Shown here: piece after piece, positions 3,791 through 50,232 of the stretch
Layout of the letters: the number at the start of each line of letters is the position of its first letter
Position numbering within the stretch: position 1 is the first letter of the stretch
Assembly (NCBI GenBank): GCA_002269645.1
Contig: NIVC01004267.1
Coordinates: 1-52,350 of the forward strand
Direction of reading: 5' to 3'
Origin: Macrostomum lignano
Taxonomy: Eukaryota
Length of the DNA: 52,350 bases
Position numbers and translations under genes: made by a program
The notes under the pieces: model-generated
Databases searched by the model: none
What the model saw: only the letters and a program-made list of their open reading frames with translations
Told to the model about the DNA's origin: nothing

Positions 3791-4643
3791 CTGACCAAGT
3801 TCCAAGATCCCAACACAAATATTTGCCAGCAAAATCAATTCCTCGATTGTCAATTGTCGCGCCTCCATTGGGACTGCAGCCTTGTTATAAAAACTCAAAC
3901 TTGTGCGCCAGCGTGAACTCTCCCTCCCACACACACCCAACCCTTCAAAGTCTTCTCAGCAGAGTCGAATTTGTAATGCTGTCCGTATCCGTACCGCGCT
4001 CTCAACCAATTGAGTGTTTATTTGCGTAATTGTAATCAATTCAGCACAAGCTCGTGCGCAAAACGCGAAGTTAACAACGCCAATACGCTGCATGCACATT
4101 CGGTTGTGTTTAAAAAGTGCTTTTAACACACACGCACAATTTTTCGTAACTTATAAATGTGGTAAATCCATTCTTTTTGTTTCCTACTCCATCCCCGATT
4201 GGCAGCTTAAACTGCAGTAACTGTCGAGTTTACAATGCCGCCTTTTTTAAACTGTTTCGCTTCTGGCCCTCCCGTACTCATGGTCTCTTCGCAGACTGTT
4301 TGGTAACCTGCTCTCCGAATTATTTCGCACGTCGTCTCAAAACTGTGACTGCACATTTACCTCGAAACCTACTAAACCGACTGCAATGTTTTTTCATTCA
4401 TTTTTTTAATATATAAGACAAATTTCAGGTGTCCAGCAAATACCAGAATATTTTTTCTTGTAACCTCAAGACACAAAGCGTATGGTTATGTAAAATGCTT
4501 GGTATATTCTGTTGCTTTTGTGTTTCCGTGCTGACGAAGGCAAGGGCAGGGGGATGTTAGACAAATGAACAAGGATGTTAGAATAACAACACGGATGTTA
4601 GACTATAACAACGAGGGTGTTAGAAAAATTAAAGAAAGAAAAT

Positions 4644-5000
4644 CAGACCAGAACAATGATGTTGGAAAAATTAAAAAGGATGTCAGACGAGAACAAGGAT
4701 GTTGGACAAATTAAAAGGGATGTCCAACCAGAACAAGGATGTTGGACAAATTAAAAGGGGTGTCCGACCAGAACAAGGATGTTGGACAAATGAAAGATGA
4801 TGCCAGACCAGAACAAGGATGTTGGACAAATGAAAGATGATGCCAGACCAGAACAAGGATGTTGGACAAATGAAAGATGATGCCAGACCAGAACAAGGAT
4901 GTTGGACAAATGAAAGATGATGCCAGACCAGAACAAGGATGTTAGACAAATGAAAGACGATGTCAGGCCAGAACAAGGATTTATGACAAATGAACAAGGT
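4644..5000. repeat. 40-bp minisatellite (CAGACCAGAACAAGGATGTTGGACAAATGAAAGATGATGC)n, about 9 units
   Basis: Period of 40 read directly (e.g. 4801 vs 4841); degenerate shorter precursors from about 4545. Confidence 0.95.
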
Positions 5001-12500: not shown

Positions 12501-13319
12501 ATTGATGATACCCAATAAAAGCACCTTAATAAGACACAGTGTACTGGAAACGTATGCACTTTAACTGACACAATGTTTCAGAACCATGTACTCTTAGTTA
12601 AAAACCGATCAGACTCTCTAATACTCATTTACTTTAAGTCACCAAGCATCCCAGGCACTAGATAGAACACTGTGTACTTTTATTCGAGAAACAAAGGAAA
12701 TACACCTAATATGAGAAGCATGTACTGTTATTAAGACGAAAATCGGATATCCGACCAAACACATTATGTACCTTAACTTATACAAAAATCTAGGACACAA
12801 TGTACTTTTTAAGCATAACCCAACGCTTTTGAGTTTACCTTCAGCCGCAGACTCAGACTTAAACTTCTCTTTTTCAGCCACCAGCAGAGCGTGCTCAAAG
12901 CAGGCCCCAATTAGACTACTCAGTTCACGAGCAGCTCGAGGCGACTCAGTGGCGAACACTCGACACAGGGCAGGCGTGGACCGGCCACCCCCGGCCGCCT
13001 CTCTGGCCGAGAAGGCAAACAAAGACCGATCCGGATCGCAGCTGGCCATCGAGATTCGTCTCAGTGGGTGCGTAGATAGCAACTGATCCGCACTGGTACT
13101 CTGATTTGATGTCGAGTAAATATCGATTCCTAAATATGATATTCTTAGCTGAACTGGTTGTCCATCAGAAGCGGCTGGTAGGCTGGTAGGCAGCTGAACT
13201 GAACTGCCTGTAGTAACAGGAAATGTTGCCACGTGTCTAACATAGCGAACAGAATCTGCAGTGCGAAGCTGTTGCTGTACACAGCTGTCAGGTATCAAAC
13301 AGTCTCGATTGCGGCGCAT
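9570..13319 (-). CDS. SH2D5: PTB + SH2 adaptor, SH2D5/EGFRAP-like; complement(join(9570..9941,10812..11091,11982..12204,12839..13319)), about 451 aa
   Basis: Exon 1 PTB (HVATFPV...LLSTHPLRRISMASCDPDRSLFAFSARE...LCRVF...LIGACF). Exons 3-4 SH2 (WWYQPELPREAAYKLLAGRPVGSFLVRNSASHPNCYALS|VCVP...HYLIQ...LHSLICHLSVIPELLPCPL). All junctions are GT-AG with matching phases 1, 2, 0. The symbol reflects domain architecture, not tested orthology; the exon 3 acceptor is ambiguous (see findings). Confidence 0.85.
10033..10700. repeat. 23-bp minisatellite (GAGTGACAGGGGCGATTTTCTGG)n in intron 3 of the adaptor gene
   Basis: Period of 23 read directly, with variant units. Confidence 0.95.
11143..11942. repeat. 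28/31-bp VNTR (minus strand CCAGCCTCCCAGATCCTCAGTTGCTGGG)n, 27 full units, between exons 2 and 3 of the adaptor gene
   Basis: CAGC anchors counted from 11153 to 11939 at spacings of 28 or 31 bp (786 bp in total). Confidence 0.95.
12293..12465 (+). mobile_element. 5'-truncated copy (3' tail) of the SINE family at 42686
   Basis: GGCCGCTGTACACTCCTGTG...CGCTTAAAGTGCGCCAGGGTGCACACA...TCTAATAAA matches 42879-43051. Confidence 0.85.
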
Positions 13320-21574: not shown

Positions 21575-22799
21575 TACATCTTAGTAGACTGTTTCTTTGC
21601 ACCACACCTGTAGCATTTCTTATTGACACCTGTGAAATTTGTTTTGCTAGTTTAATGTGTTTGAGGAGTTTGTTTCTTAATAGTATCTTTTAGTAGTCTG
21701 TATGTGATTTTCTAGCTTTGTCACAAATTTGCCTCTATGCTCATTTTTATTTTTCTATGCAATGCACTTTACTCATTCAAAAATTTTATTTTTGTAAAAT
21801 TTTATTATTCGTAAATTGCTTCTAGGGAAGGCAGGTTGATATAGTGCCTAGAAATATTATATGCACAAATATTTCTATTTTTCTTGTGCTCAAAATACTC
21901 TATTTTTCCTATGCACAAAAGCTTCATTTCTTAGAAAAAGGCATATTTAAATTTACACAAAAAAAGAAATTACTAGTATTTTTTGTTTAAATGTTGTTAA
22001 TCACAAGAATATTAACCTTTTGTTTTAAACAAGCCTGATGGCCAATATAAATAGAAGCTCCGAGTGGGCCAAAAGAGCAACCGTCCTTGACTTATCAATT
22101 AACTTTGAGCAACATTAATAAGCTCTTACTAAATCTTAAAAGCAGTCACTTGAAAATTGACTTATTCATTTCTTAGAGTAGAAGCCCCAAATTGGGAGTA
22201 GTATTTAGATCTGCTAAAAAGCGAGAATTGCCTCAGGGCAGAAGAACTGCTTAAAAGCAGGAGGATTTGCCTCAGGGCAGGGAAAACGCATAAAGCCATG
22301 ACCCTCTGATCCCAGGAATGGCAGGACTGAGAGACTAAGAATTAGACAGTGCCAATAGACTGCTCAGGCTAAAAGTAGATAATAGACACTACCAATATAA
22401 GTAGATAAGTAGACGCTACCAATATAAGTAGATAAGTAGACACTACCAGTAATAGTAATACATTTATGCAAAAGTACATTAAGTAGAGACTAGAGAGACA
22501 GAAGTTTAGCACTAGGACAACTTTGGTGGCAGTTCATAAGATAAGTAACTAGGCAAAGGTTAACAATCAGAAAGACTTAGTTAACACCCCTAGCACAGCT
22601 TGGTGATATGACGGTGGGATTTTCATAGAGAGCCAAAAGGCCTGTAACACAGGGCTTGCAAATTGGCAAGAAAGATGATATGATCAAAGCATGAGAACAG
22701 CCATGAGAGTACTACGTCCCACAAACTGGCATTCCAAGCAGGAATAGGCAGACTTTTACCTCAAAGGCTAGAAAAGAATCCAGCTTATGGCTGAGGGGC

Positions 22800-23880
22800 A
22801 GTTGAGAGTGGAGAAGAAGGAATAGACTATTTAAAAAGAGAGGAGAGGTGAGAAAGGGAATAAGAGAAATATAAAAGATAATAGAAGAGATGAGGGAGTG
22901 AGGACAATGAGAGGAGAGAGTAGAGAGGAGCAAGTAGAGAGGAGAGAGTAGAGAGGAGCAAGTAGAGAGGAGAGAGTAGAAGAGCGAGTAGAGAGTAGAG
23001 AATAAAGTAGCGAGTGGAGAGGAGAGAGTAGAGGAGCAAGTAGAGGAGAGAGTAGAGAGGAGCAAGTAGAGAGGAGAGAGTAGAGTAGACAGTAGAGTAG
23101 CGAGTGGAGAGGAGAGAGTAGAGGAGCAAGTATAGAGGAGAGAGCAGAGAGCTGCAGATGAGAGGAGAGCAGAGAGAAGAGCAGATGAGTTAATAAAGAG
23201 GAGAAAGGAGAGATGAGAGAGTAAATGGAAGAGAGAAGAGATTAGGTTGTACAGATAAGAGAGATGTAGGGAGGATTGGAAAATGAGAAATGAGAGATAA
23301 AGAAGGAGAGTGGAAAGAGAGAAAAGACGACAAGAGAGGGAGAGTCTATATAGAAGAGAGAAGACAAGAGAAAAGAAGAAAGGAGAAGGGAAAGTGAGGA
23401 GACAAAAGAGGTGAAAGAAAATAGTACAGAGGACAGAATGAGAGAACATATAAGACAGTGAAGATGACAGATGAAAGGGGGGGGTGAGCTGAGAGCAGAG
23501 AGTGAGAGACAAAAATGAACAGATGAGAGATGGGAGAATAGAGAGAACAGAGGAGAGATAAGAGACAAGAGATTACAGAGACAAGAGTCAAGAGAAGAGA
23601 CAAAGGGAGAGAGAAGTGAGTGAGGCAAGAGGAGAAAAAAGAGGAGAATGGAGGGGAGAGAGTAGAGAGGAGAAAGATGGGAGAAGAGAGATAAGAGAGA
23701 GGGGGGAAACAGAGAGGGGGAAGCAGAGAGAGAGGGGGAAAGCAAAGAGAAATGAAAAGAGATAAAAGAGAAGAGAGAGAAGAGAAAGGAGAGATCAGAG
23801 AGCAAATAAAGACGAGAAAGAAGAGAGGAAACAGAAGAGAAGATAGAAGTTTCAAAGGATCCAAGTGACATAGGGAGAGT
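22800..23880. repeat. GA-rich low-complexity polypurine tract
   Basis: About 1.1 kb of mostly A/G on the + strand, with GAGAGGAGAGAGTAGAGAGGAGCAAGTA-type subrepeats. Confidence 0.9.
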
Positions 23881-24636
23881 CAGAAGCAGAGGCCAGAGTT
23901 TGCCAATACATGTTTTAGAGTCAGACAGACATTAATTGCCTATTTAAAGTAAAAAGCCCCCTAGCCAACAATATCAATGTTTGCCTTAAATCCTAATTTT
24001 ATGCCAATGTACTCCATTTTGTTTACCTTGATCCTACTAACTCTTAACAAGTTTTTGTTTGTGTATGACCTTAGATTTCAGAATACATGCAAAAGTAGTT
24101 CCAGGGATTGGAATTCCCTGGGTTCAAAATCTATGGGTTTTAACAGCTTGTATATATAAAGGCCTAATTAATGACAATAACATGATTATTATGGTCAGGC
24201 CTAATGTTTATATATTGTATCCATGAAAATATGAAGATATTTTCCTGTCTAAGTATCTAGAACTACCCAAGTTTGGCACAATATATTTGTCAAGGAAACC
24301 TAATCTTCAATTAAATACTGAATATGATTTGATTCCAATAATTTAATTTGTCTAGCCTACTCTTTAGCCTTCACTGCTTTAGGTTCAGAAGGAAGTTATA
24401 TGTTATGTTACCACTACACAACTATGCTATTTCGATATAGTAATACTTAACTATAGATTGACCAGTATTGTCTGCTGCAACCTATATGTAACTCTTATTC
24501 CAATAACCTTAACAAACAGGACACAAACAGCACTATAATATTGGTATAGTGATATAGGTGTAGTAGTATGAAAGCTTCGATCAAACTAAAATCACGAAGA
24601 AAATATTGGTGTTTGATTATTTTAAATTAGTTATAA

Positions 24637-27600
24637 TGTGACGATAACCGGCAGACTCGAAATTAACTGACGAAGACAAATACAGCAGCTAGGCAAATTG
24701 TGTAGCGGTAGCACTTGATGATAGTAGCGAATGATGCGGGCGGTGGCCGCAATTTTTATTTATTGTAACCGTATGAGTAGATAGTTTGGGCGATCGTTAT
24801 TATCAATTCCGTCTGGGTAGTTTATAGAGATGGGCCAGAGTATTTGCTAAATCCGTAAGGAATGCACTGGGCGGCTACGCAACAATAAGATGGATGATTG
24901 ATGATAGAGCGAGTCGATGAGCCTGAGGCAATGTCGACGATGTGATGGCAGTGATCGTGTGATTGCGGTACTCGTAGCAAGAACCCTTTATAGACGGTAG
25001 TGGTGGCGTGGTCGAGATAATTGACGGTGGCGGTGGCGTGACTGAGACTTGGCAGAGGCGTGGTTTAGAACTGTGGCGGAGCGAGGCGGAGAGAGAAGAC
25101 GGGTAAACAAGCAAACAAGGGTCGAGCGCCCCAGCCAGACAGGACTGATAAAGAGAGGGCTAGCTGGGGGTAGGTGCGCGAGGAGAGTGTTGTGGCCGCT
25201 GGCCAAATGAATGAAATCGATTCACTTAAGGCGAAGGAGAGGAGAGGAGAGGTAGCTCTCAGCTATTAGTTAGCTAGCCAATATATATTATCTAACTGAT
25301 ACGAGCTAGATTTACATCGATGCGCGTAAGTTACAAAATAGCATTGAGCATGCACATTCACAACATCATCCCCCCGTGCAAAGAGTGACAGATTACGGGT
25401 GGGATAAGCAGACGCATTAAAGCAAGCAATGTCAATGGAACAGTTTTCGGTGCATGAGCAGTCAGTTTGTCAAGTCAGTCAATCGTGAGTCACAACGTTG
25501 CCGAATCATTGAGGCGGTGCACGAAGTCTCTCAGAGCGGCGCAGCGGTGGCGTTGGCGGTGACGCCTCTGGTTGCCCGCCGCCCGGCTGTTGCAGAGCCT
25601 CTGTGTCGTCGGCCCCGTCACCCCAGCCGTGGTGGTCATCAAGGATGCAGCGGCTGATGTGCCAGCGGCTGCCATAGGTCAGGGTGATCATTGTGTTGCC
25701 CTCGTGACTGACGACTGTCTGTGGCTCGAAGACGCCGTTGCTGAGCTTTCCGCGCCTCGGCCGGCGGACGCGGACACGGCTCCCGACAGTCAGCGCTGCG
25801 TCCTTCAGCGGCTGGTTCCGCTTACGCATCCCGCGGCGGCTCTTGGCCCGCTGCTGTCGCTCCATGACGCTGCGCCGCAGCTCCTGGTCCGTCGTTGACT
25901 CGGTGCTTGCTGGTTGAAGACGATCGAGAGGCAGGCGGAGCTTCCGTCCCAGCATCAGTTCAGCCGGCGACTTCTTGGTCAGCGCGTGCTCAGATGATCG
26001 ATACGCGAGCAGCAGCCCCTGAACCGCCTGCTTCACTGGCACACCGTCGGCGAGTAGTGCGCTAGTGATGAAGCCGTTGAACCTCTCGACTCCGCCATTC
26101 TGCTGTGGACAGTAGAACGGAGTGCGACGGTGCTTGATGCCGAGCGAGCTGAAGAAGTCCGTGAACTCGGTTGACACAAACTGAGGTCCGTTGTCCGTGG
26201 TAATTTCGTCTGGAAGCCCCCAGCGGACAAACAGGCTGCGAAGGGCTTCGATACACGCAGCGGAAGTCACGGATGAAGATGCGATGATCTCAGGCCACTT
26301 GGAGTAGAGATCGTGGACGACGATGAAAAATCGATGGGCACATTGGCTTCCGGCAGCTCTCCAACGATATCGACTTGCAGCTGTCGCCATGGACCCGCTG
26401 GTAGCTCCGTCGTTGACCATGGGACCTTGATCGGCTTGAACGCTTTCTCGGACAGGACGCAGGCACTGCAGTTCCGCACGAAGGCCTCCACGTCGGTGTC
26501 GATGCGCGGCCACCAGACCGTATCGCGGCACCGCGCCTTGACCTTGGCGACGCCGAGATGTCCTTGATGCGCCTCTGCCAGCACAAGGTCGCGGAGGTCA
26601 GTCGGGATGAGGGCTCAGCTGCCTCTCACCAGGCAGCAACCATCATTCCACAGGTAGAGCTCGTGTTGCACCTGGTGGAAGCCCTTCAGGTCGGCTGGAA
26701 CCTCGGCTGGCCATCCGTTGATGAGGAACCCGATGACTCGCTGCAGTTGGTTGTCGCTCTTGGTTGCATCGGCCAGTTGAGTGACTGAGATCGGCTCGGC
26801 GCTTCTGGCCAGCACAAGGTTGATGTCGGACTCGCTCTGGTGCTGCTCATTGGACTCGTTGGCTGTGCTCTTGCCGTCGTAGCCGTAGCGAGACAGAAAG
26901 TCGGGCAGGACGTTGAGCTTGCCGGGGACGTACTCGATGTCGAAGTCGTAGACGAAGAGTCGCTCGCACCAGCGCTGAAGTCGAAGAGGTCGTTGGCCGA
27001 CTCCTCGAGGTGATAGCAGGGTCGTCAGCGCTTGATGGTCGGTTAGAAGCTTGAACTTGCGACCGTACAGCAGCAGGTGCCAAAGCTCGCAGCTCCAGAC
27101 GCAGGCCAAGGCCGCCTTCTCTGACGCAGAGTAGTCGGACAGGGCTCGCGAGGCGAAGGCGACTGGCCACAGCTGTCCGTGCTCGTCGAATTGGCTCAGG
27201 GTCGCGCCCAGGGCGACGTCACTGCTGTCGCAGGAGACGACGGTTTCGTGATCTTGGTCGAAGAACTTCAGGCACGGTGCTGATGAGATGAACCGCTTCA
27301 CCTCGCTGAAGGCTGCCTCGCATTTCGCGTCCCAGTTCCATGGCGCGTCCTTGCGCAGGAGAGCTGTCGGCTCGGCGACGTGAGACAGGTTCTTGATGTA
27401 GAACTAGAAGAACTTTGCAAAGCCGAGGAATGAAGCCAACTCTGCCGTATTTGTGGGTGCCTTGAGTTTCGACACGGACTCGGTGTGCGACTGGAGAGGT
27501 TGAATTCCCGCTGCGCTGACGCGGTGTCCGACGAACTCGATCTCCGACGCCTTGAAGGTGCACTTCTTGAGGTTGACGGTTACTCGATGCTGCAGCAGCT

Positions 27601-30046
27601 TGTCCAGTACCTGAAGTACGCAATTTTCGTGCTCGGCCTCCGTAGCGGCGTGAACGGCGATGTCGTCTTGATAGTGAACGACGCCTCTGATGCCTTGGAG
27701 GATCTTGCCGACGACCTTCTGGAAGGCCGCCGGAGCCGAGCTGATGCCGAACGGCATCCGTCTGAATCGGTAGAGGCCGGATTCGGTGTGGAAGCAGGTC
27801 AGATTCTTGGTGTCATCATGCAGAGGCAGCTGTAGATACGACTGTTTGAGGTCGATCCTTGAGAATAACACCGAATTGTTGAATTCGGTCACCAGGTCAG
27901 CGAAGGTAGGCAGTGACATCGAGTCCGGGATGATCGCCTTGTTGACGCTTCGCAGATCAACGCAAAGGCGCAGCTTCCCATCGGCCTTGCGGTCACAGAT
28001 GAAGTTGGACTGCCAGTCGGGGATATCGCCGTCGACTCGCTCGATGATGCCTTCTTCCTTCCAGCGTTGAATCTCGCTGTCGCACTTCTGGCGCAGCGCT
28101 AGAGGCAGTCGGCGCAGACGCTAAGCTACGGGAGGCACAGTTGGGTCAACTCCGGGACGGTGGCAGAACCCTTTGATCTCACCGAGTCCGGTGCCTAAGG
28201 CGTGGTAATTAGCTGGGATCCATTCGGGCATCGACGTAGTCGGAGGCTCCTCGGACTCGACCGTAGCAATCTGATGTCCGGAAGGCCCGAGAACTCTGCA
28301 GTTCAGCTTGTCCATCAGGTCGATTCCCATCAGGTCATCGCTGTCCATGACGACGGGGAAGCTGAACGATGGGAGCTGGACGCAGTCGAACTCGACCGTG
28401 GCGTCGATCTCGCCGGCGACGCTGATGCTGGAGCCGTTGTACGACACGAGCTGTCTCCCAGACGGTCGCAGGGGGACCTTGGGGCCGAAAATCTTCCGGC
28501 AGGTCTGCATGTTGATGATGGAGACCTTGGCAGCTGTGTCCACTAACAGCGGAGTGCTGAACCCGTTGATCCTGACGCTGGCTCTCTTGTACTCGCCCTT
28601 CTTGTCCGTGCTGACGGCGAAGATGCTTTGCTGAGCGAAGCTGTCGAAGTCGACGCATTGAACCTTCTTCTGAGCCGAGTGCGGTGCCGTGGTGCTGCTC
28701 TTGCACACGCTGGCGAAATGGTTGAGCTTTCCGCACTTCTTACACGCTTTGCCACGGGCAGAGCAGCGCGGGTCGCTGCCTATGCGATAGCCCGGCGTAC
28801 CGCAGTGCGAGCAGCAGGGCTCTTGCAGTGGTCGCGCTGCCTGGCCTCTGGTGCCGATCGGAGCTCTCTTGGCGTTGATCTTCCTGACGCTGTCGTCAGC
28901 TGCATTCTTGCCGGTCAAGGACTTCTCACTCTGGACAGCTTTTTCCACTTGGGCGGCAATCTGGATTGCTCCGTCCAGGGTGAGCTCTTGGTCTAGCAGG
29001 AGGCGTTCGCGCACCTTTGCTGATGAAGTGCCGAAGATCAGCTGGTCCAAGATGAGGTCGTCGTGAAGGCTCTGGAACTCGCTGTCTCTGGCGGCATAGC
29101 GCAAGTTTGCCACGAATGCGTGCACGCCTTCGCCGCCCCGCTGGACGCACTTCCGGAAGTCATGGCGCTTGGCATACACGCTGACGGTGGGCTGAAAGTG
29201 CTCATTGAGCAGTTTGCATGCCGCTTCGAGTGTCGCTGGAGCTTCATCTGGAGACTTGATGAGAGTCCGGTAGACTCGCACTCCTTCCCGCCGGAGGCAG
29301 TGCGATCTTCATGGCTTCTTGCAAGCCGTCGACTCCTGACGCTAGCAGGTAGGTGTCGAACTCAGCGGCCCAAGTTTCCCATGAAACCACAGGTGTTCCT
29401 GGGTTGTCGAGAAATGGAGGCGGTTCTCTGAGGTTTAGTCGTTGCGCTGGCGCTGTGGCGTTGTCAGAGCTGCTTATTTCTAACTTTGCTGTGTTGAGTT
29501 TGCAGAATTGCAAGGCGATAGCGAGAGTTGGCTTGTGGGCCTTGGCTGCCGTGAGTTGAGTTGAATTTTGCGCGGGGTGGTTTTTCGCTAAGTCCCTGCT
29601 TGCGATGCCAATGTTGTGGCCGCTGGCCAAATGAATGAAATCAATTTCACTTAAGGCGAAGGAGAGGAGAGGAGAGGTAGCTCTCAGCTAATAGTGAGCT
29701 AGCCAATATATATTATCTAACTGATACAAGCTAGATGTACATCGATGCGCGTACGTTACATAATAGCATTGAGCATGCACATTCACAACAGAGAGCTTAA
29801 TTTCAGGCTAGCATAATTTATGCGCGGCTTTTCTATTGGCCGGCGAGAAAAACCAACTTGAAAACAGAAATTATCGATCGCATTATACATAGGCTTTACA
29901 AACGCACACAATGTTGTTTAAAATTCTTTGGGCATTACTTTAAGCAGACGTTAGAGTACGAGACCATTGAATTAACAATATTATAGATTGGCACTGCTTT
30001 CGCTAAAACGGCCCTTGTCGGGGCTACCTCAACTGACAACGTCACA
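24637..30046. mobile_element. Solo LTR (about 800 bp) split by the nested Gypsy: 24637-25187 plus 29796-30046
   Basis: Ends TGTGACG...CGTCACA (inverted), flanked by a 4-bp direct repeat ATAA (24633-24636 and 30047-30050); AATAAA on the minus strand near 24760. Confidence 0.75.
25188..29790 (-). mobile_element. Full-length but disrupted Ty3/Gypsy LTR retrotransposon (Mag/K02A2.6-like), gag-PR-RT-RH-IN
   Basis: LTRs at 25188-25365 and 29612-29790 (TGTTGTG..CACAACA; 7 substitutions and 1 indel). GAGAG TSD, PBS-like TGGCATCGCAAGCAGGGAC, PPT GGGGGGATGA. CCHC knuckle CKKCGKLNHFASVC, protease VDTAA, RT YQDD, RNase H CDSSDVALGA, integrase AHQGH..C..C, TDNGPQF and NGGVERFN. TAG stops at 28121 and 27404, plus frameshifts. 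Confidence 0.97.
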
Positions 30047-33513: not shown

Positions 33514-33878
33514 AATGCGTTGCTCGTTTTAAAATAGATTGAGTCTAGAATAGATACTAGCTGGTTAGAAGATCGCAAGCCTAGAGAAGTTCAAGCAAAT
33601 GCTGTGAAGACCTGCAATTCCTGGAGACCCTGCAGCACCCTGGAGTACAGCGCGAAAATTTCCAGCACCGATTGGCCCTCAAAAAGCTCGATTGGTCCGT
33701 TTATCGACAGCGCAATTTATTTTGCAAGGAAGCGGGCCAAGTCACGTTTAGCCGACACTATGGCTTTTTGAACTTCGTCTCAGATGTTGGCGGAATAATG
33801 GGAATTTATCTGGGCATGTCGCTGTTGACTCTGTATGAACTGCTTGAGCTAGTCTACGATTTGGTGATGTCGCTTTGA
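33514..33878 (+). pseudogene. DEG/ENaC 3' fragment (copy 1)
   Basis: AVKTCNSWRPCSTLEYSAKISSTDWPS, then a deletion/frameshift, then VTFSRHYGFLNFVSDVGGIMGIYLGMSLLTLYELLEL (TM2). Begins right at the LTR boundary; no 5' part found. Confidence 0.9.
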
Positions 33879-34102
33879 GAAGATTCACAACAGTCAGCCG
33901 TTTTCGCCTTGAAACAGTACAAAGACAATGGCGCTTCTGACAGAAACAGGCAGTATGGACACCATGAGGACCTAAGAAGTACCTTGATTATTAAACGTGC
34001 ATGTATAGGAACTTAGCTCTAGATTGTCAAATTAAGACGTTAGTATTTAAAACGTTTATTAGTTCTTGACTTGAAACATAAGATGCATTGTAAACTGCTA
34101 TT

Positions 34103-34494
34103 GGGGCCGTAGCCTAATGCTCTAGCACGGCGCTCTGATGCGCCAGCGGCCCAGGCTCGGTTCCAAGTGCAGTCACATTAAAGTGGGGCTAAATTGAAAT
34201 CTTGAATTGGGTCCAAAGCACAGTGAAGTGTACATGCCCAACGATAAATATACTCAGCAACATTGAAAAGTCGCCACCCTTTGCCCCAGTGAGCCGTGTG
34301 TTTTGACCAGCAATCCATTCAATCTTCGCCTTTCGCTCTTCCCAATCCCTCCTCACCCAGTTGCGTCACTTAAAAGTCAATCTGAGCTAGAATTTACTGT
34401 GTACTCTCAAATGTGGCGACTTCCTAATGTTGTTGAGTACAATTTCGCTTAGAGTGCCGTCAAGGTGCACAGAGCCCCTGACTCTTATAAAAAT
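34103..34494 (+). mobile_element. Diverged tRNA-derived SINE copy interrupted by a MITE
   Basis: Head GGGGCCGTAGCC...GGCTCGGTTCCAAGTGCAGTCACATT and tail CGCTTAGAGTGCCGTCAAGGTGCACA..ATAAAAA match the 42686 copy; the middle is replaced by the MITE. Confidence 0.8.
34253..34437. mobile_element. MITE (Tc1/mariner-like), 185 bp
   Basis: 25-bp imperfect TIRs CTCAGCAACATTGAAAAGTCGCCAC / GTGGCGACTTCCTAATGTTGTTGAG with TA on both sides. Confidence 0.75.
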
Positions 34495-35534: not shown

Positions 35535-37145
35535 ATGCAGTCACTAAAGTCAGCTTTAGAGAACACTTCGGCGCATGCGCTCCCGAGAACGGTGTCAGCC
35601 AAGCCAATTTACATCCGAATCGTCTGGTTGCTCATCTTTTTCACAATGCTGGCGCTTTTCCTCACAGGATTCAGCGAGTTTGTGGTTAAACTGCAGCATA
35701 ACGAGCCAACCAGCACACAGGAAGTGGGAGTTGAGAGCTTCGTCTTCCCGGACGTGTACATGTGCTTCGAGAGTCCAATCTCTGGAAGCTACTCCGCGAG
35801 GGTCGATGCGGCCACAGCTGATGCAATCAATGCAGGACTGAATGCGACAAGCAGAGCCATACAGGACTACATCGCAATGCTGGGTATAACAGGTGAAGAA
35901 GCTCGGCAAACTGAAGCAGAGTTCAGCTTCATGTATCCACAGTCCCTGCCTTACAGCTTGCTGATTGACGCTCTGGCGCACAGAGCAGAACAGTCGGTTA
36001 TCACCAGCCAAATCACCTACCTCAGCAACTATGGAACGGCTTTGTATCGGGACCTTCGACCTGAAAGCTTCTATCATCCGAAGTGGCTTCGCTGCCTGAA
36101 ATGGGCCCTCAACAGTTCGATGCAAGCAAAAATTTTGCAGGCGGGAAAGACGTCAGGCATAATTGCTCGAATTCTTATCGATCAAAACTTCTCCGATATT
36201 TATAGCGCCTCTAACAGAATTCAACAGAAGGTGTTCGATCAGAGCACCCCGATCCCGACCTCGGACTGGACTCTTGGCGACCCGGTGGGTCCAGACAGGA
36301 GCTCGGGTGTTCGCGTGTTCCTCGCACCTCCGGGTCAGTACCCGTCCGACTTCACGACGTCGTTCTCGCTCAGTCCCGGGAAGCACCACACCGTGGAGAT
36401 CGGCATGACCAAATATCAGTACAAATCTAGCCAGTTCGATTGCTTGGAGAATGAGCCCCCAGTTCAGTTCTTGAACCCTTACGATCGGACTCCCTATGAG
36501 TACAGTTACAGCTACTCGTACTGCTTCTACTACCAGTATCACAAGCAGTGTCAGACTTGCTTGCAACTGTCCGGAGAGATTAGCCCAATGCCGTGGCCAT
36601 TAAGAGGCTACAAATACGTGACCAACCTCACTGGTTTGCCAAACTTTTTCTCAGTATTGGCCATGAATGGTTCGCTTGGAGAATATTGCGATGCTGCGAT
36701 CAACCAGACTCGCGTGAATGCCGTGAAGGCGTGTCAATCAAAACGGCTGTGCAGCGACCAGGACTACAGCGTTCGGATCTCCAGCACTGACTGGCCTTCG
36801 CTCAGCTCGCTCGATCCGTTTATCAGAAGCTTCATCTTCCAGTCTTGGAGCAGGGCCAAAGCCCAGAATCTCAGTGTGCCGGCGCTGGACTTTCTGCTTA
36901 GCGGCAGCGCCGACAGGGTCGTCAGTTACTCGAACAGAAACTTGCTTAAAGTGCACTTTCTACCGAGTAAAGTTCAGTGCGACAAGATCACCTTCTCGAG
37001 GGATTACGGAGCATCGAGTTTCATCTCTGATGTTGGTGGCATCATGGGAATTTACCTGGGAATGTCCTTGTTGACGCTGTGTGAAGTTCTCGAACTGATC
37101 TACGATATATCAGTAAATTATCTGCTGAAAAGAAGAGGTGAATAG
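35535..37145 (+). CDS. DEG/ENaC (amiloride-sensitive Na+ channel family) subunit, intronless, 536 aa (copy 2, intact)
   Basis: Pre-TM1 AHALPR, TM1 (IVWLLIFFTMLALFL), FPDVYMC, SGVRVFL, ISSTDWPS and TM2 FISDVGGIMGIYLGMSLLTLCEVLE are family signatures; AATAAA at about 37286. Confidence 0.93.
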   Translation: MQSLKSALENTSAHALPRTVSAKPIYIRIVWLLIFFTMLALFLTGFSEFVVKLQHNEPTSTQEVGVESFVFPDVYMCFESPISGSYSARVDAATADAINAGLNATSRAIQDYIAMLGITGEEARQTEAEFSFMYPQSLPYSLLIDALAHRAEQSVITSQITYLSNYGTALYRDLRPESFYHPKWLRCLKWALNSSMQAKILQAGKTSGIIARILIDQNFSDIYSASNRIQQKVFDQSTPIPTSDWTLGDPVGPDRSSGVRVFLAPPGQYPSDFTTSFSLSPGKHHTVEIGMTKYQYKSSQFDCLENEPPVQFLNPYDRTPYEYSYSYSYCFYYQYHKQCQTCLQLSGEISPMPWPLRGYKYVTNLTGLPNFFSVLAMNGSLGEYCDAAINQTRVNAVKACQSKRLCSDQDYSVRISSTDWPSLSSLDPFIRSFIFQSWSRAKAQNLSVPALDFLLSGSADRVVSYSNRNLLKVHFLPSKVQCDKITFSRDYGASSFISDVGGIMGIYLGMSLLTLCEVLELIYDISVNYLLKRRGE

Positions 37146-37766
37146 GTCAACGCAGGAACTATAGCAGATGGCGAAAAATGATGTGAATCAAAGTTTTATA
37201 CCAATGATTAAAACTGCACTGAAAACAACTACGGAGAATAATGTAAAAACTATCTATTATTAATATTTACGTTATTTACACTGAAAATAAATTTTTGCTT
37301 CAATTTAAAGCAGAATCTCTTTTGTTGCTACGTAGCTTTATCTAATAATTCTTTCACTCAAGACAGCTGTTGGAAGTCAACCCTTAAGCCGTATATTAAT
37401 GTCACTGGTCCCTGATTTAATTTAGCTATGATTTATTTCTAGCAAAGTGGGCATACACAGGACATTGAATACAGGAATGAAAAAACTGGAAAATGGTCAG
37501 ACAATCTGGTTAAACAATCGGTGCACACAGATGTCCTCTGTTTATTCAGTCAATTATTTACTTGGCTTTAGAGTTTTAGTTTTCCGATTAGCAATTGACT
37601 AGCAATCTTTGCCCCCCGATGGGGGACATCTGGATAGAACTTCTGTTCTCTACAAGTAAAAAAAACCGCCAAATAGAGTCTTCACAAAGACAACAGAAAA
37701 ACTGCTCAAATGAAGCGCAATGCAAAAAGAAAACATCCCAAGACAGCAAACATCCCCCCCTCCTCC

Positions 37767-37995
37767 CAGATAGCAAGCACCCCCAGGTAGCAAGCACCCC
37801 AAGATAGCAAGCACCCCCAGATAGCAAGCACCCCCAGATAGCAAGCACCCCCAGATAGCAAGCACCCCCAGATAGCAAGCACTCCCAGATAGCAAGCACC
37901 CCCAGATAGCAAGCATCCCTCAGATAGCAAGCATCCCAGATAGAAAGAACCCCCAGATAGCAAGTATCTATCCTTAAATAGCAAGCATCCACCAG
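37767..37995. repeat. 17-bp minisatellite (AGATAGCAAGCACCCCC)n inside the Helitron
   Basis: Tandem copies read directly. Confidence 0.93.
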
Positions 37996-38089: not shown

Positions 38090-41000
38090 CTGTGTTTGAA
38101 ATGGAGACTATTTTATGTTTGAATTGGTGGCTTTTTAATGTTTGGCATGGTGACTCTTTAATGTTCTACATGGTAGCTCTTTAATGTTTGACATCGTGCC
38201 AGTTTTATGTTTGTCATGGTGGCTCCTTAATGTTAGAAACGGTGGCTCTTTAATGTTTGACATGGAGTCACATATATGTTTCACATGGTGGCTCTTCTAT
38301 GTCTAACTTGGTAGCTCTTTTATGTTTGATATCGTGGCTCGTTAATGTTCGACATGGTGGCTCTTTAACGTTCGACATGGTGGCTCTTTAACGTTCGACA
38401 TGGTGGCTCTTTAACGTTCGACATGGTGGCTCTTTAATGTTCGACATGGTGGCTCTTTACTGTTCAACATGCTGGCTCTTTAATGTTTGACATAGTGGCT
38501 CTTTAATGTTTGACATGGTGGCTCTTTTATGTTTGACATAATGGCTCCTTAATGTTAGACATGGTGGCTGTTAATTGTTTGTTATGTAGTCATATGTATA
38601 TGTTTTACATGGTGGCTCTTTTATGTGTGACATGGAGTCACGTATATATTTGACATGGAGTCACATATATGTTACATGGTGGCTCTTTAGTGTTCGATAT
38701 GGTGGCTCTTTAATGTTTGACATGGTGGCTTTTAATGTTCGACATGGTGGCTCTTTAATGTTTGACATGGTGGCTCTTTTGTGTTTGACATGGCTCTTAA
38801 ATGTTTGACATGGTGGCTTTTTTATGCCTGACATAGTGGCTGTTTAATGTTCGACATGGTGGCTCTTTAATGTTTGACATGGTGGCTCTTTTATCCTTGA
38901 CATGGTGGCTCTTTAATGTTCGACATGGTGGCTCTTTAATGTTTGACATGGTGGCTCTTTTATCCTTGACATAATGGCTCTTTAGTGTTTGACATGGCTC
39001 TTTAATTTTTGACATGGTGGCTTTTTAATGTTCGACATTGTGGCTCTTTATTATTTGACATGGTGGCTCTTAGATGTTTGATATAGTGGCTCTTTTATGC
39101 TTGAAATGGTGGCTCTTTAATGTTCGACATGGTGGCTCTCTAGTGTTTCACATGGAGTCACGTGTGTGTTTGACATGGAGTCACGTATATATTTGGCATG
39201 GAGTCACGTATATGCTTTACATGGTGGCTCTTTTATGTTTGACATAGTGGCTCTCTAGTGTTTCACATGGAGTCACGTATGTGTTTGACATGGAGTCACG
39301 TATATATTTGGCATGGAGTCACGTATATGCTTTACATGGTGGCTCTTTTATGTTTGACATAGTGGCTCTTTAATGTTTGACATGGTGGGTCTTTAATGTT
39401 TGACATGGTGGCTTTTAATGTTTGACATAGTGGCTCTTTAATGTCTGACATTGTGGCTCTTTAATGTTCGACATGGTGGCTGTTTAATGTTTGTTATGTA
39501 GTCATATGTATATGTTTTACATGGTGGCTCTTTTATGTGTGACATGGAGTCACGTATATATTTGACATGGAGTCACATATGTTTGACATGGTGGCTCTTT
39601 AGTGTTCGATATGGTGGCTCTTTAATGTTTGACATGGTGGCTCTTTTATGTTTGACATAGTGGCTCTTTAATGTCTGACATGGTGGCTCTTTAATGTTTG
39701 ACATGGTGGCTCTTTTATGTTCGACATGTTGGCTCTTTAGTGTTTGACATGGCTCTTTAATGTTTGACATGGTGGCTCTTTTATGCTTGACATGGTGGCT
39801 CTTTAATGTTCGACATGGTGGCTCTTTAATGTTCAACGTAGTGGCTCTTTAATATTCTACATGGTGGCTCTTTTATGTTTAACATGGTGGCTCTTTAATG
39901 TTCGAAATGGTGGCTCTTTTGTTTTACATGGTGGCTCTTTAATGTTTGGCATGGTGGCTCTTTTTTGTTCGAAATGGTGGCTCTTTTTTGTTCTACATGG
40001 TAACTCTTTTATGTTTGATACGGTGGCTCTTTAATTTTTGACATGGTGGCTCTTTAATGTTCGACATTGTGGCTCTTTATTATTTGACATGGTGGCTCTT
40101 AGATGTTTGATAAAGTGGCTCTTTTATGCTTGAAATGGTGGCTCTTTAATTTTCGACATGGTGGCTCCGTTATGTTTAACATGGTGCTCTTAAATGTTTG
40201 ACATGGTGGCTCTCTAGTGTTTCACATGGAGTCACGTGTGTGTTTGACATGGAGTCACGTATAAATTTGGCATGGAGTCACGTATATGCTTTACATGGTG
40301 GCTCTTTTATGTTTGACATAGTGGCTCTCTAGTGTTTCACATGGAGTCACGTATGTGTTTGACATGGAATCACGTATATATTTGGCATGGAGTCACGTAT
40401 ATGCTTTACATGGTGGCTCTTTTATGTTTGACATAGTGGCTCTTTAATGTTTGACATGGTGGGTCTTTAATGTTTGACATGGTGGCTTTTAATGTTTGAC
40501 ATAGTGGCTCTTTAATGTCTGACATTGTGGCTCTTTAATGTTCGACATGGTGGCTGTTTAATGTTTGTTATGTAGTCATATGTATATGTTTTACATGGTG
40601 GCTCTTTTATGTGTGACATGGAGTCACGTATATATTTGACATGGAGTCACATATGTTTGACATGGTGGCTCTTTAGTGTTCGATATGGTGGCTCTTTAAT
40701 GTTTGACATGGTGGCTCTTTTATGTTTGACATAGTGGCTCTTTAATGTCTGACATGGTGGCTCTTTAATGTTTGACATGGTGGCTCTTTTATGTTCGACA
40801 TGTTGGCTCTTTAGTGTTTGACATGGCTCTTTAATGTTTGACATGGTGGCTCTTTTATGCTTGACATGGTGGCTCTTTAATGTTCGACATGGTGGCTCTT
40901 TAATGTTTGACATGGTGGCTTTTTTATGCTTGACATGGTGGCTCTTTAATGTTTGACATAAAGTCACTTATATGTTTTGCATGGTGCCTCTAAATATTAG

Positions 41001-41990
41001 ACATGGTGGCTCGTTTAGGTTTGACATGTTGGCTCTTTAGTGTTTGACATGGCTCTTTAATGTTTGACATGGTGGCTCTTTTATGCTTGACATGGTGGCT
41101 CTTTAATGTTCGACATGGTGGCTCTTTAATGTTTGACATGGTGGCTTTTTTATGCTTGACATGGTGGCTCTTTAATGTTTGACATAAAGTCACTTATATG
41201 TTTTGCATGGTGCCTCTAAATATTAGACATGGTGGCTCGTTTAGGTTTGACATGTTGGCTCTTTTATGTTTGACATGGTGGCTCTTTTATGTTCGACATG
41301 GTGGCTCTTTTTTGTTCTACATGGTAACTCTTCTATGTTTGATACGGTGGCTTTTTAATATCTGACATTGTGGCTCTTCTATGTTTGACATTGTGGCTCT
41401 TCTATGTTTGACATGGTGGCTCTTCTATGTTTGACATGGTGGCTCTTTAATGTTTGACATTGTGGCTCTTCTATGTTTGACATTGTGGCTCTTCTATGTT
41501 TGACATGGTGGCTCTTTAATGTTTAACATGGTGGCTCTTTAATGTACGACATAAAGGTTCGTTTATGTTCGACATGGTGGCTTTTAGGTTTGACATGGTG
41601 GCTCTTAAATGTTTCACATGATGGCTCTTTAATGTCTTACATGGTGGCTCTTTTATGTTTGACAATGTGGCTCTTTAATGTTTTACATGGCGGCTCTTTT
41701 ATGTTCGAAATGGTGGCTCTTTAATGTTCGACATGGTGGCTCTTTAATGTTTGACATGCTAGCTCTTTAATGTTCGACATAGTGGCTCTTTTACGTTTGA
41801 CATGGTGGCACTTTAATGTTCGACGTGGTGGCTCTTTAATGTTCGAAATGGTGACTCTTTTATGTTTTACATGGTGGCTCTTTAATGTTTGACATAGAGT
41901 CACGTATATGTTTTACATGGTGCCCATGTAATGTTTGACATGGTGCCTCTTTTATGTTTGACATTGTGCTTTTTTATGTTTAGCAGTTTC
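38090..41990. repeat. About 3.9-kb 23-bp satellite (TTTGACATGGTGGCTCTTTAATG)n with higher-order duplications
   Basis: Period of 23. The marker TGTTATGTAGTCATATG recurs at about 38580, 39493 and 40567; AAAGTCACTTATATG at about 40959 and 41186. Confidence 0.97.
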
Positions 41991-42639: not shown

Positions 42640-43138
42640 CGACTGCTTGGAGCAGCAATACAAGCGTACCTACAGGCTATCGCCAGGGGGCCGTAGCCCA
42701 GCGGTCTAGCGCAGGCTCTGGTGTGCCAGCGACCCAGGCTCGATTCCAAGTGCAGTCACATTAATTTGGGGCTGAATTGGAATCTCGGCTTGGCTCTGCT
42801 CGTGCAATTAACGGCCTTGAGAGCCAACCCCCCCAAGGCACAGTAAAGTGTACATGCCTAACGATAATATAAAGTTAGGGCCGCTGTACACTCCTGTGTG
42901 AGTGTGTGCCTGCGTAACGTATCCGCGCGCTTGTATGCCTGCTCAGGGGAGTCGGCGGAATGGGCAGTAATGCCTCTCGCCGGTTGTGTGCCTATGTCGC
43001 TTAAAGTGCGCCAGGGTGCACACAACCCCCTGCCTCTAATAAAAAAATAAAACAGGCTATCGCCATGAATCCAATATAACTAGCGGCGTTGAAATTGACA
43101 ACGACACACGGACTACACAGAAGCGTCTCTGGTAAAAT
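42640..43138 (+). pseudogene. DEG/ENaC 5' relic (copy 3) split by a SINE
   Basis: GACTGCTTGGAGCAGCAATAC (42641) matches 45780. After removing the SINE, ATG...GCGTTGAAATTGACAACGACACACGGACTACACAGAAGCGTCTCTGGTAAA aligns with MHTLKAALESTTAHGLPRTVSGK. Confidence 0.85.
42686..43051 (+). mobile_element. Complete tRNA-derived SINE (about 366 bp)
   Basis: A-box TAGCCCAGCGG, B-box-like GGCTCGATTCC, A-rich tail AATAAAAAAATAAA, and a perfect 14-bp TSD ACAGGCTATCGCCA (42672-42685 and 43052-43065). Confidence 0.93.
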
Positions 43139-45831: not shown

Positions 45832-47466
45832 ATGCATACACTGAAAGCAGCGTTGGAATCGACAACGGCTCACGGACTTCCCAGAACCGTCTCTGGAAAG
45901 CCGATTTATGTACGCGTCGGTTGGCTACTGCTTTACCTCGCTATGCTGGGCCTCTTTCTAAAAGGATTCTCCGACTTTATTATCAAACTGCAGGCTCAGC
46001 AGGTCACATCGACTTTGGAGGCTAACCAGGTAGAGTTTCAATTTCCAGATCTTTACGTCTGCCTCGAGAACCCAATATCGTCAAGTTACTCCAGCCAGAT
46101 TGACAATAAAATGGTCAACTCAGCGCTTTCATCAGGACTCTATCACCTTTATGCAGATTACATGGCTATGGGAAAGGACGATCTCACAGCAAGAAGCTAT
46201 ATAAAAAATCTCTCAGGGTTGCTGCCGCAGTCTGCTCCGTATACTTTCCTGGCAGACAAGCTTGGTCACAGAGCCGAGCAAACAGTCATTGAAAGCTACG
46301 CCATCTACAAACATGATTCTGGTTTACCTGGATATGAAGCCCTGCAGCCACAAGCCTACTACGACCCAAACTTTCTTCGCTGCCAAAAGTGGAAACTGAG
46401 CAGTGACTTGCAGAAAAAAATCTCACGAGGTGGCTCCAACTCAGGACTAATTCTCACTCTGTTTGTTGACACGGGTTTCCCAGCAGTCAGAATCGACTCT
46501 GGCGTGTTCATCTTTGGTGCCCCGATTCCCCTGTCTGACTGGCCATTGTCGGAGCTCAGTTTGATCAGCACGGACAGGCGGTCTGGTGCTCGAGTGTTCC
46601 TCACCCAGCCAGGAGAAATTCCCTCAGACTTTGTGAAGTCATTCTCTTTGGATGCAGCCAAGTATCACACCGTTTTAATTGGGATGACGCAGCACGTGTA
46701 CAAAGAAGGCCAGTTTGACGACTGTCTGAGCGAATCTGCAGATGTTCAGTTTGTGAATTTTTAAGATCAAACGCCCAGCAATTATTCGTACAGCTATTCG
46801 TATTGCTACTACTATGAGTACCATAGGCAGTACCAGTCGATAATAAACTCGTCTGGTTTGCAGTCACCTCTGCCATGGCCGTTGAGAGGAAAGCCCTTCG
46901 CTTATAACTTTTCCGTTGTATCAATTGCTGACCTGATGAGACTTGAATCAAATGCTTCGATAGTACAGCGGGTTAATAGGATTGAGGTGGAAGCACAAAA
47001 ATTTTGCAAGACAAAGCGTCCATGCAGCCTGATGGACTACAGCATCAGCATCTCCAGTGCCGATTGGCCTACACAAAGCTCGGCTGAATCGTTTCTTCAA
47101 ACTTCGGTGAAGCTGGCTCAGCTAAATGCTCAAGCTAAAAATCAGAGCGTCCCGGCTCTCGACTACCTATTGAACAACTATTCAACAAGCGACTTTGCCT
47201 CCTACGTTGGCAGTAATCTGTTGAAAGTGCACTTTAAACCGGAGCGCGTATTCTGCGACAGAGTGACATTCTCCAAAGATTACAGGCTTTCCGACTTCAT
47301 CTCGGACGTTGGCGGCATAATGGGCGTGTATCTGGGCATGTCCCTGCTGACCCTGTGCGAGCTGCTGGAACTTGTGCACGATGTCGCTTTCGGACGGAAA
47401 AGTCGGGTGACCAGTCTGCAAAACAATGACGATCTGTCAGCGGAAGTTAAGGCGACGGGTACTTGA
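45832..47466 (+). pseudogene. DEG/ENaC subunit (copy 4), 544 codons with one in-frame TAA at 46762-46764 (recent pseudogene, null allele or sequencing error)
   Basis: ORFs 45805-46764 and 46858-47466 share a frame, and the intervening 31 codons (DQTPSNYSYSYSYCYYYEYH..) align with copy 2. HG motif, FPDLYVC, WPT and FISDVGGIMGVYLGMSLLTLCE are intact. Confidence 0.88.
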
Positions 47467-49236: not shown

Positions 49237-50232
49237 ATGCAGCAGCTTATCGACCACTACGCACGTTATGCCAAGAGTCGTTAGCGACAAGCCAGTCTAT
49301 GTCCGAATCATGTGGCTATTGATCTACCTGAGTACGTTGGCCCTTTTCATGAAAGGCTTGGCAACAGGGTGTTTGAGTCTATCTGACGCCACCCGGTAAG
49401 TACCCAACTCATTTTGTGACGTCATTCTCGCTTTACACTGGACAGCACCACGCCGTTGAGATTCGAATGCGCGGCAAAGTTACCAACCAGGCTAGTTTGA
49501 CTGTCTGAGTGAACTCCCAGAAGTGCAGTTTTTGAACCCGTATGATCATAATCCATACAATTATACGTAGAGTTATTCATATTGTTACTACTACGAGTAT
49601 CACTGTGAGTTTCTGAAGCTATTCAACTTCTCGGGACAACTGAGTCCATTTCCGTGGCCGCTGAGAGGCAAGAACTTTATATTGAATACTTCCATCATAG
49701 ATTGGATTGGATATTTGATAGTAAAAGTACAATGTGAAAAATGTCTTCAATATATAAAACACTAACTGATCACTGCAATTCGAAGTGACCTTGTAAAACC
49801 CTCGACTACACAGCGTGTGTCTCCAGCGTTGATTGGCCCACCGAGAGCTCGATGACTTCCTTCATCAATGACGTCATTCCAGCTGTTAAAGTGCAAGCTC
49901 GGACAAAGGGTCAAGTGGCGCCTGTAATAGATTTTTTGTTTGCTGAAAATAAATCAACTGTAACCTCCTATGTGAGCAAAAACCTGCTGAAAGTTCACCT
50001 GAAACCAGCTTGTACGCTTTGTTTTGGTGCGTCGTTCTCGAGGGACTACGGACTATCATATTTTCTGTCGGATATTGGCGGCATCATGGGAATCTAGTTG
50101 GGCATGTCGTTGATGACAGTGTGCGAACTGTTCGAACAGATATTTGATCTGCTCTATTTCAATAAGCGGACGATTTCTACGACACCTTCTGTGCCTGATT
50201 TTTCATCTGAGCGGAATTCTTCCGCAGGCTGA
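49237..50232 (+). pseudogene. DEG/ENaC pseudogene (copy 5) with a large internal deletion
   Basis: TTHVMPRVVSDKPVYVRIMWLLIYLSTLALFMKG joins directly to GV*VYLTPPGKYPTHFVTSFSL; later SYSYCYYYEYHC, PWPLRG, VDWPT and FLSDIGGIMGI*LGMSLMTVCE. Several stops and frameshifts. Confidence 0.92.

Follow-up and report, generated by a model that had tools for sequence, protein, structure and literature searches.

Few conserved thumb cysteines in a probably flatworm-specific DEG/ENaC subfamily represented by a tandem gene cluster of Macrostomum lignano

The stretch of Macrostomum lignano DNA analyzed here (52,350 nucleotides, contig NIVC01004267.1 of assembly GCA_002269645.1; hereafter the window) carries a tandem cluster of DEG/ENaC channel genes, of which five loci were matched when it was searched by tblastn with the second locus and two relatives as queries. 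This second locus, copy 2, occupies positions 35535-37145 of the plus strand as a single unbroken open reading frame (ORF) of 536 amino acids plus stop, and is the only intact copy of the five. The explanation that we consider likely is that the product of copy 2 is a subunit belonging to a divergent, fast-evolving, lineage-specific DEG/ENaC subfamily whose thumb domain has fewer disulfides than usual, and that it represents a real but modest variant of the superfamily and not a new architecture. So far the clade concerned appears to be confined to Macrostomum-type flatworms.

DEG/ENaC proteins are trimeric, amiloride-sensitive-type Na+ channels, and the five-rung disulfide ladder of their thumb is treated as a near-universal hallmark and considered to turn the thumb into a rigid lever between the ligand sites and the pore. 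When 132 relatives were aligned with MAFFT and scored for cysteine column occupancy, ten conserved thumb columns were recognized; exactly ten cysteines are present in 63 of the 132 sequences (the canonical set) and twelve in 14, the FaNaC-like sequences. A preliminary description of this DNA, made from the sequence alone, had taken about ten thumb cysteines including a C-x-C motif as canonical, in agreement with these counts and with the published observation that the ten are >90% conserved over 31 Drosophila PPKs (PMC3583452). Cysteines also make up one third of the residues identical among placozoan, nematode, and vertebrate ectodomains (PMC6827283).

The thumb of copy 2 (C303 to C406; 36441-36752, plus strand) lies within positions 36430-36800, which correspond to codons 299-422 and run from ..SQFDC, in the strand that precedes the thumb, to the DWPS motif that follows it; no other notable feature was seen there on either strand, the minus-strand ORFs being short by-products. 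It holds seven cysteines, the number originally reported and confirmed when the codons were read. Four of these, C303 (36441-43), C330 (36522-24), C400 (36732-34), and C406 (36750-52), are invariant in an alignment restricted to the clade, and they fill the only canonical thumb columns occupied in copy 2, in its paralogue copy 4, or in the M. lignano proteins P0001 (UniProt A0A1I8GD92) and P0002 (PAA48052.1/A0A1I8J2R4). The other three, C339 (36549-51), C342 (36558-60), and C385 (36687-89), are specific to copy 2. Translation of copy 4 likewise agreed with the earlier reading, there being four thumb cysteines (C298, C325, C392, and C398), HRQYQSII in place of the HKQCQTCL of copy 2, and no equivalent of the pre-terminal C385.

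Cysteine number is graded among the relatives. An 8-Cys sister group (P0006 and others) has no cysteine in the third column or at one position of the last pair; within the Macrostomum clade six thumb cysteines are found in P0003, P0004, P0161, and P0016, and four in P0001, P0002, P0005, P0008/P0158, and copy 4. Partial loss is also seen elsewhere in the alignment, which contains 22 sequences with eight and two (P0141 and P0144) with seven. Chance can be excluded as the cause, because all members of a clade with a bootstrap value of 99% have their losses in the same columns. Outside the thumb, neither column of the canonical C-x6-C pair is occupied in any clade member or in the 8-Cys sister group, and the post-TM1 (first transmembrane helix) cysteine/beta-ball pair, C77 and C187, is present in copy 2. 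From these patterns, about three of seven extracellular disulfides, and only two of the usual five thumb bridges, would be left in the clade. By column homology and the chicken ASIC1 crystal structure (PDB 2QTS), the invariant cysteines map to C291-C366 and C309-C362/360 of ASIC1, the two wrist-proximal bridges of the thumb; those missing from the clade would then be the C313-C360/362 bridge and the tip bridges C322-C344 and C324-C336. An additional cysteine of copy 2, C482 (36978-36980), is specific to the subclade formed with copy 4, P0001, and P0002 and has no canonical counterpart. It is situated in the last palm strand before the second transmembrane helix (TM2), in the contexts KVQCDKI, RVFCDRV, RVLCDRM, and RMDCDKL in copy 2, copy 4, P0001, and P0002, respectively, and because of its equivalents the extracellular cysteines of the 4-Cys proteins are odd in number.

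Copy 2 itself was not found in public protein collections, and exact look-ups of it and of P0001 among assemblies gave no match. When 1.84 billion cluster representatives were scanned exhaustively with HMMER, 466 matches were obtained at E<1e-3 and only five at E<1e-30, and every named sequence among the closest matches came from M. lignano, in keeping with the lophotrochozoan origin that had been proposed. The closest public relative is P0001, with 53% identity; word-indexed homology searches with copy 2 and then with a clade profile (A2) found nothing beyond it, and at this level of identity copy 2 and P0001 are not the same gene. P0002 (36-38% identity), PAA58710.1, and PAA55182.1 belong to the same clade. 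P0001 and P0002 resemble copy 2 in the four invariant thumb cysteines, a (YS)3-C-aromatic stretch, a PW.LR motif, a GMS filter, and short N- and C-termini, and differ from it in that copy 2 adds C339, C342, and C385 and has HA in place of HG near its N-terminus. In a neighbor-joining (NJ) tree with 200 bootstraps, the Macrostomum clade was recovered at 99%, copy 2, copy 4, P0001, and P0002 grouped at 99.5%, and copy 2, copy 4, and P0001 at 95%. As annotated, P0002 (489 aa) is N-terminally truncated: at its locus (M. lignano NIVC01004250.1, L003, 9779-11481), tblastn homology to copy 2 residues 16-287 runs upstream of the annotated start, and a gap of ~50 nt or a frame change is found just before the thumb, so that the real gene, judged from this homology, probably includes TM1 and one short intron.

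The remaining four loci, all on the plus strand, are damaged to differing degrees. Copy 1 (33571-33923) is a C-terminal fragment extending from the late thumb to TM2 and frameshifted across two frames, and copy 3 (43083-43136) a relic of ~18 codons of the N-terminal AALKLTTTHGLHRSVSGK motif, matched weakly (E=0.03). Copy 5 (49262-50211) is a degraded pseudogene in four pieces, with three frames and several stops, from which residues 48-257 (~210 codons) are deleted; SYSYCYYYEYH and PWPLRG are still visible in it. Copy 4 (45832-47466) is a full-length paralogue with 49% identity to copy 2, interrupted by one in-frame TAA (46762-46764) where copy 2 has a tyrosine TAC codon (NF*DQTP versus NPYDRTP), ~20 codons upstream of HRQYQSII. 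The halves on either side of the stop match the Pfam ASC model collinearly (2-283 and 293-455), which suggests a complete gene hit by a nonsense mutation and not one split by an intron, and hence a probable recent pseudogene. A hidden intron over the stop was considered and rejected, GTGAATTTTTAAG being only 13 nt long and out of frame; an intron at this point is also implausible given that the flanks match copy 2 and P0001 residue for residue. The TAC/TAT-to-TAA change is the sole disabling lesion of copy 4, every other family motif being kept, and could reflect very recent pseudogenization, a null allele that is segregating, or an erroneous base.

Copies 4 and 5, which had first been cited in evidence of an unusual thumb, are both pseudogenes, the one by its TAA and the other by deletion, frameshifts, and stops. 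They raise the possibility that the low cysteine count is no more than random loss in a dead cluster: the nonsense codon of copy 4 precedes the "lost" cysteines by 20 codons, and copy 5 is heavily degraded. However, copy 2 is intact, copy 4 bears a single lesion and keeps the other family motifs, and the 4-Cys pattern is present in the intact proteins P0001, P0002, P0005, and P0008/P0158, with the four retained cysteines invariant. Comparison of copy 2 with copy 4 gives a dN of 0.47 and a dS saturated at ~2, and the thumb has the same dN (0.48) as the other parts of the protein; with dN/dS well below 1 and the thumb evolving like the remainder, purifying selection without thumb-specific relaxation is therefore indicated. 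Because intact public proteins share the pattern and because of this dN/dS ratio, the 4-Cys thumb is evidently not a product of copy 4 pseudogenization, and decay, largely refuted by the present results, is highly improbable as its cause. Misassembly, misreading, or a missing exon that hides canonical cysteines is a general possibility in such data, to which the gap or intron of ~50 nt just before the thumb of P0002 lends some color; but the copy 2 ORF spans the whole Pfam model, copy 4 is collinear with it, and the normal-length thumb aligns without gaps to M. lignano proteins from a different assembly, which makes artefact a negligible prospect. No unspliced exon that would restore the missing cysteines was found in either copy.

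As to the direction of change, it had been supposed that copy 4 lost cysteines that copy 2 kept, which is probably backwards: copy 2 is nested among 4-Cys sequences (95-99.5% bootstrap), and the three additional cysteines would therefore have been gained by copy 2 and not lost by copy 4. The tree and alignment thus make it most likely that four cysteines are the ground state of the subclade, with C339, C342, and C385 acquired in copy 2. If instead its seven cysteines were an ancestral intermediate that keeps C322, C324, and C344, with copy 4, P0001, and P0002 having lost them independently, this would account for the resemblance of HKQC-QTC to the HRQCGC of P0006 and for the position of C385 at the start of helix alpha5, the site of canonical C344, and would accord with the greater ease with which cysteine pairs are lost than gained. 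Such retention would require the same three cysteines to have been lost independently two or three times at the least, as against gain in one lineage. Moreover, when positions are counted without gaps between C330 and the PxP motif, the copy 2 cysteines fall at +9 and +12, whereas the C-x-C of the 8-Cys group stands at +13 and +15; C339 and C342 are thus offset from the canonical columns by 3-4 residues. The HRQ match is peculiar to P0006 and not group-wide, and next to C385 stands a small insertion that is found in neither P0001 nor copy 4. With the canonical partner C336 missing, the count is also odd. Retention is accordingly a serious but unlikely alternative to gain.

The assignment of copy 2 to the DEG/ENaC superfamily, as first proposed, is secure and rests on profile, fold, the GxS filter, and the pre-TM2 motif. 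Copy 2 matches Pfam ASC (PF00858) over positions 2-455 of 455 (E=3.7e-36; 125.6 bits against a cut-off of 23.6), and Na+ channel function and trimer formation of its product may be presumed by homology. Structure prediction with AlphaFold2 (AF2) from a 39-sequence alignment gave a model with two transmembrane helices and a beta-rich core (predicted local distance difference test, pLDDT, 89.2; predicted template modeling score, pTM, 0.84). TM1 is placed at residues 25-55 (35607-35699), and the pre-TM2/TM2 helices, including SDVGGIMGIYLGMS and the GxS filter, at residues 493-534 (37011-37136; helices 493-508 and 512-534). The filter is GMS (G509-M510-S511, 37059-37067), and it and WPS are present in copy 2 as first reported, together with the post-TM1 FPDxxxC and pre-TM2 GG..G motifs; the latter reads SDVGGIMG, and no variation was seen in the clade alignment at G501, G502, G505, G509, or S511. 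TM2 is alignable to those of FaNaC1 and ASIC. The pre-TM1 motif is His-Ala (H14-A15, 35574-35579) where the family norm is His-Gly: copy 2 has SAHALPR, copy 4 and P0001 have TTAHGLPR, and HG is found in most relatives. HA also occurs in P0161, an M. lignano relative. The change is a conservative variant and no reason to exclude copy 2 from the superfamily.

Two thumb helices are predicted in copy 2. The first, alpha4 (residues 327-343, 36513-36563; block pLDDT 89-97), carries C330, C339, and C342 and is preceded by the (YS)3 stretch, and the second, alpha5 (residues 381-401, 36675-36737), has C385 at its N-terminal and C400 at its C-terminal end. Confidence is mostly >89, with the exception of residues 371-390, whose successive blocks have pLDDT values of 80 and 68; within alpha5 it is 68 for residues 381-390 and 92 for 391-400. 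The intact 4-Cys protein P0001 is modeled with similar helices (329-345 and 382-398; pLDDT 87.5, pTM 0.80). In the subclade of copy 2, copy 4, P0001, and P0002, the thumb is 99-104 residues long, compared with a mean of ~92 in 10-Cys sequences. Thus, the description of the thumb as "drastically reduced" applies to its cysteine count and fails for its size and predicted fold; as modeled, the thumb is normal in both and merely has fewer disulfides.

The claim of an undescribed architecture is consequently too strong, since AF2 keeps both thumb helices in 7-Cys and 4-Cys proteins alike. That the lost disulfides nevertheless amount to a new architecture among DEG/ENaC channels and bring another mode of activation, such as a flexible thumb for a new ligand or mechano- or thermo-gating, seems to us decidedly unlikely. 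It draws on the disappearance of three of the five thumb bridges and of the C-x6-C bridge from a clade under purifying selection, on the concentration of the losses in the finger-facing thumb tip where ASIC and FaNaC have their ligand pockets, and on the failure to find a published description. Dandamudi et al. further reported three M. lignano channels near the FaNaC branch, which may or may not belong to the present clade, that were unresponsive to FMRFa and other peptides (PMC9234716). Set against these points are the canonical predicted fold, helix lengths, and thumb size, and the existence of other lineages without one or two thumb pairs, which implies that cysteine number is graded and that no architectural switch has occurred. 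A more particular proposal, that the clade is a functional subfamily in which a disulfide-free tip with an aromatic core is gated by a stimulus new to the family, and in which the copy 2 thiols (C339-x-x-C342 on alpha4 plus C385 on alpha5) serve as a redox- or metal-sensitive switch in place of a plain bridge, is speculative and should be regarded as very doubtful. A different activation mode is possible, if unsupported, for copy 2 as the modest variant favored here. The 4-Cys pattern itself turned out to be present in public M. lignano proteins, so the relatives of copy 2 are already public but undescribed: no account of such a reduced-Cys DEG/ENaC clade was found in the literature, and that on the centipede DEG/ENaCs BRTNaC1 and PDPNaC1 makes no mention of thumb cysteines.

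Comparison with characterized channels supports a FaNaC-like label in part. Malacoceros FaNaC1 (PDB 8ON7-8ONA) and the Aplysia channel (7YVB) are the best sequence matches to copy 2 in the PDB (E=2.6e-13; overall identity 17-19%), and in Foldseek searches FaNaC1 ranked first (E 1e-23 to 2e-22; template modeling score, TM, 0.58-0.64), followed by ASIC1a (E~3e-21), ASIC5, ASIC2, and ENaC, with a probability of 1.00 to FaNaC, ASIC, and ENaC chains. Copy 2 and FaNaC share a spiralian host, and a Gx(I/M)S-type filter context, SD.GG..G.W/Y.G.S..T..E..EL. FaNaC-type channels, however, have twelve thumb cysteines and the C-x6-C pair, whereas copy 2 has seven and is without C-x6-C; the extra FaNaC cysteine pair, in an alpha4-alpha5 insertion, is present in FaNaC1 and 14 relatives, and both of its columns are empty in copy 2. 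In the NJ tree the 12-Cys FaNaC-like sequences P0029 and P0049 branch outside the Macrostomum clade, deep nodes being poorly supported. The label therefore holds for the nearest solved fold (TM 0.64, with ASIC similar) and not for the thumb or the tree placement: by cysteine count and tree copy 2 does not appear to be a FaNaC, and FaNaC1 would be its nearest solved relative.

Chicken ASIC1 (2QTS) and human ASIC1a have the same overall fold as copy 2 (Foldseek E~1e-18 to 1e-21; TMt about 0.6-0.67) at 15% identity, and equivalents of ASIC1 C313, C322/C344, C324/C336, and C173/C180 are lacking in copy 2. In ASIC, a post-TM1 histidine pair and a palm lysine are needed for proton gating, and acidic-pocket carboxylates are found on alpha5 and in the finger. 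In a HMMER pairwise alignment of low confidence, the ASIC1a histidine pair is matched in copy 2 by N55 and E56, and H54 is displaced from it by one position. The sequences next closest to copy 2 after its own clade are those of the 8-Cys group (P0006, from Tara Oceans metagenome ERZ28653609, P0007, P0011, P0013 to P0015, and P0017 to P0020), with 22-31% identity and E values of 1e-30 to 1e-17. They resemble the clade in the GMS filter, in an intronless gene, and in the loss of the C-x6-C pair and one thumb pair, and differ from it in that the CxC motif and its partners are kept. The Drosophila PPK family offers a comparable evolutionary mode, being a large lineage-specific tandem DEG/ENaC expansion with sensory roles, but its members, unlike those of the clade, have kept the ten thumb cysteines (PMC3583452). 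Sequence similarity to PPKs is weak: profile A1 matched PPK26 (9PZN) at E=1e-43, compared with 1e-126 for FaNaC1.

A second character of the group is a tyrosine-rich stretch, YSYSYSYC[FY]YY.YH, which, with PWPLRG, is seen in the translations of copies 2, 4, and 5 as had been stated. The stretch is a subclade feature, and its YS..C core also belongs to the canonical Y-S-x-x-x-C motif. Phenylalanine, tryptophan, and tyrosine together constitute 14-16% of the thumb in copy 2, copy 4, P0001, and P0002, compared with 9.4% in 10-Cys sequences; over the alignment, the correlation of aromatic content with cysteine number is weak (Spearman rho -0.30, without phylogenetic correction). The idea that aromatics substitute for disulfides in general was rejected, as the 4-Cys protein P0008 has an aromatic content of only 8.7%.

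These observations can be accommodated by a history in which thumb disulfides were shed stepwise, from the canonical ten cysteines to eight in the sister group and then to six or four in the Macrostomum clade. The wrist-proximal end of the thumb, which couples to the pore, would have stayed stapled, and the finger-facing tip would be disulfide-free and evolve quickly. In ASIC and FaNaC the thumb tip lines the ligand or proton pockets. The two-helix thumb seems to have been kept, with an aromatic-rich core in the subclade, (YS)3-C-[FY]YY and PWPLRG. In the copy 2 model, C339/C342 lie in the last part of alpha4 and C385 in the first part of alpha5, which is the place of the canonical C322-C344 bridge, and one tip bridge has probably been re-made there, leaving one spare thiol. 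The cluster itself would be subject to birth and death, with one intact gene, one freshly killed, and three relics, among which minisatellites and a retroelement are scattered. That the ligand is sensory or a peptide is a guess, prompted by the variable thumb tip and by the birth-and-death pattern, which characterizes sensory receptor expansions, the Drosophila PPKs among them.

Several points weigh against this account. The sister placement of the 8-Cys group is weakly supported in the NJ tree, gain as opposed to retention is judged by parsimony over four sequences, and other 4-Cys members show no such aromatic enrichment (P0008, 8.7%). The pairing of the cysteines is deduced from column homology and helix positions and not from coordinates, and the retained last pair is spaced C-x5-C, for which the alignment cannot tell C360 from C362. 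AF2 confidence is no measure of stability without disulfides. Finally, in ENaC a change at the glycine of the HG motif leads to lower open probability, and the HA of copy 2 could mean a low open probability or a modulatory subunit.

If the subfamily is as proposed, a clade kept under purifying selection with only the two wrist-proximal rungs would constitute a natural experiment on which rungs of the ladder are dispensable, with one member, copy 2, having apparently re-evolved a tip rung. Its members could become easy-to-express, reduction-resistant scaffolds, and they add to the picture of large, fast-turnover, lineage-specific spiralian DEG/ENaC expansions with mostly unknown ligands. The value of the finding is incremental, as the fold is unchanged and the relatives are already public.

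The surroundings of the cluster are rich in repeats. About 4 kb upstream of it, on the minus strand (25506-29281), lies a fragmented Ty3/gypsy-type long terminal repeat retroelement, in which separate ORFs match gag-aspartyl protease, RVT_1, RT_RNaseH, and integrase core and the pol frame is broken in several places; no resemblance was seen between its RNase H ORF and the RT-fusion protein P0159. Minisatellites, of period 17-40 nt, are very abundant (4643-4994, 6047-7462, 7926-9413, 10031-10652, 11144-11942, 37765-37964, and 38093-41981) and are the source of lengthy spurious ORFs and of locally marked GC and AT skew. The largest (38093-41981), between copy 2 and copies 3 and 4, consists of 170 copies of a 23-mer over 3.9 kb. 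A CT/AG-rich low-complexity tract at 22000-24000 (GC skew 0.47, AT skew 0.45) contains long Ser/Leu-rich minus-strand ORFs.

Elsewhere in the window, a minus-strand ORF at 12639-13319 encodes a PTB/PID phosphotyrosine-interaction domain (Pfam E=7.5e-07) and is probably an exon of a neighboring gene; a word search of a 5.8-billion-protein collection gave no homologue. A plus-strand ORF of 583 aa at 2039-3790 is Gln-rich and of low complexity (poly-Q/H/P), has no Pfam match, and could be an exon of a Q-rich nuclear protein or a compositional artefact. An AATAAA at 37286-37291, ~140 nt past the copy 2 stop, is a possible polyadenylation signal, though it may be due to chance in this AT-rich region. 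Between the window and the contig that carries P0002, DNA comparison gave two short matches only, of 49-64 nt; one of these, 34246-34294 against 14737-14785 of L003 (49 nt, 92% identical), the sole sign of relatedness at the DNA level, possibly represents a shared dispersed repeat.

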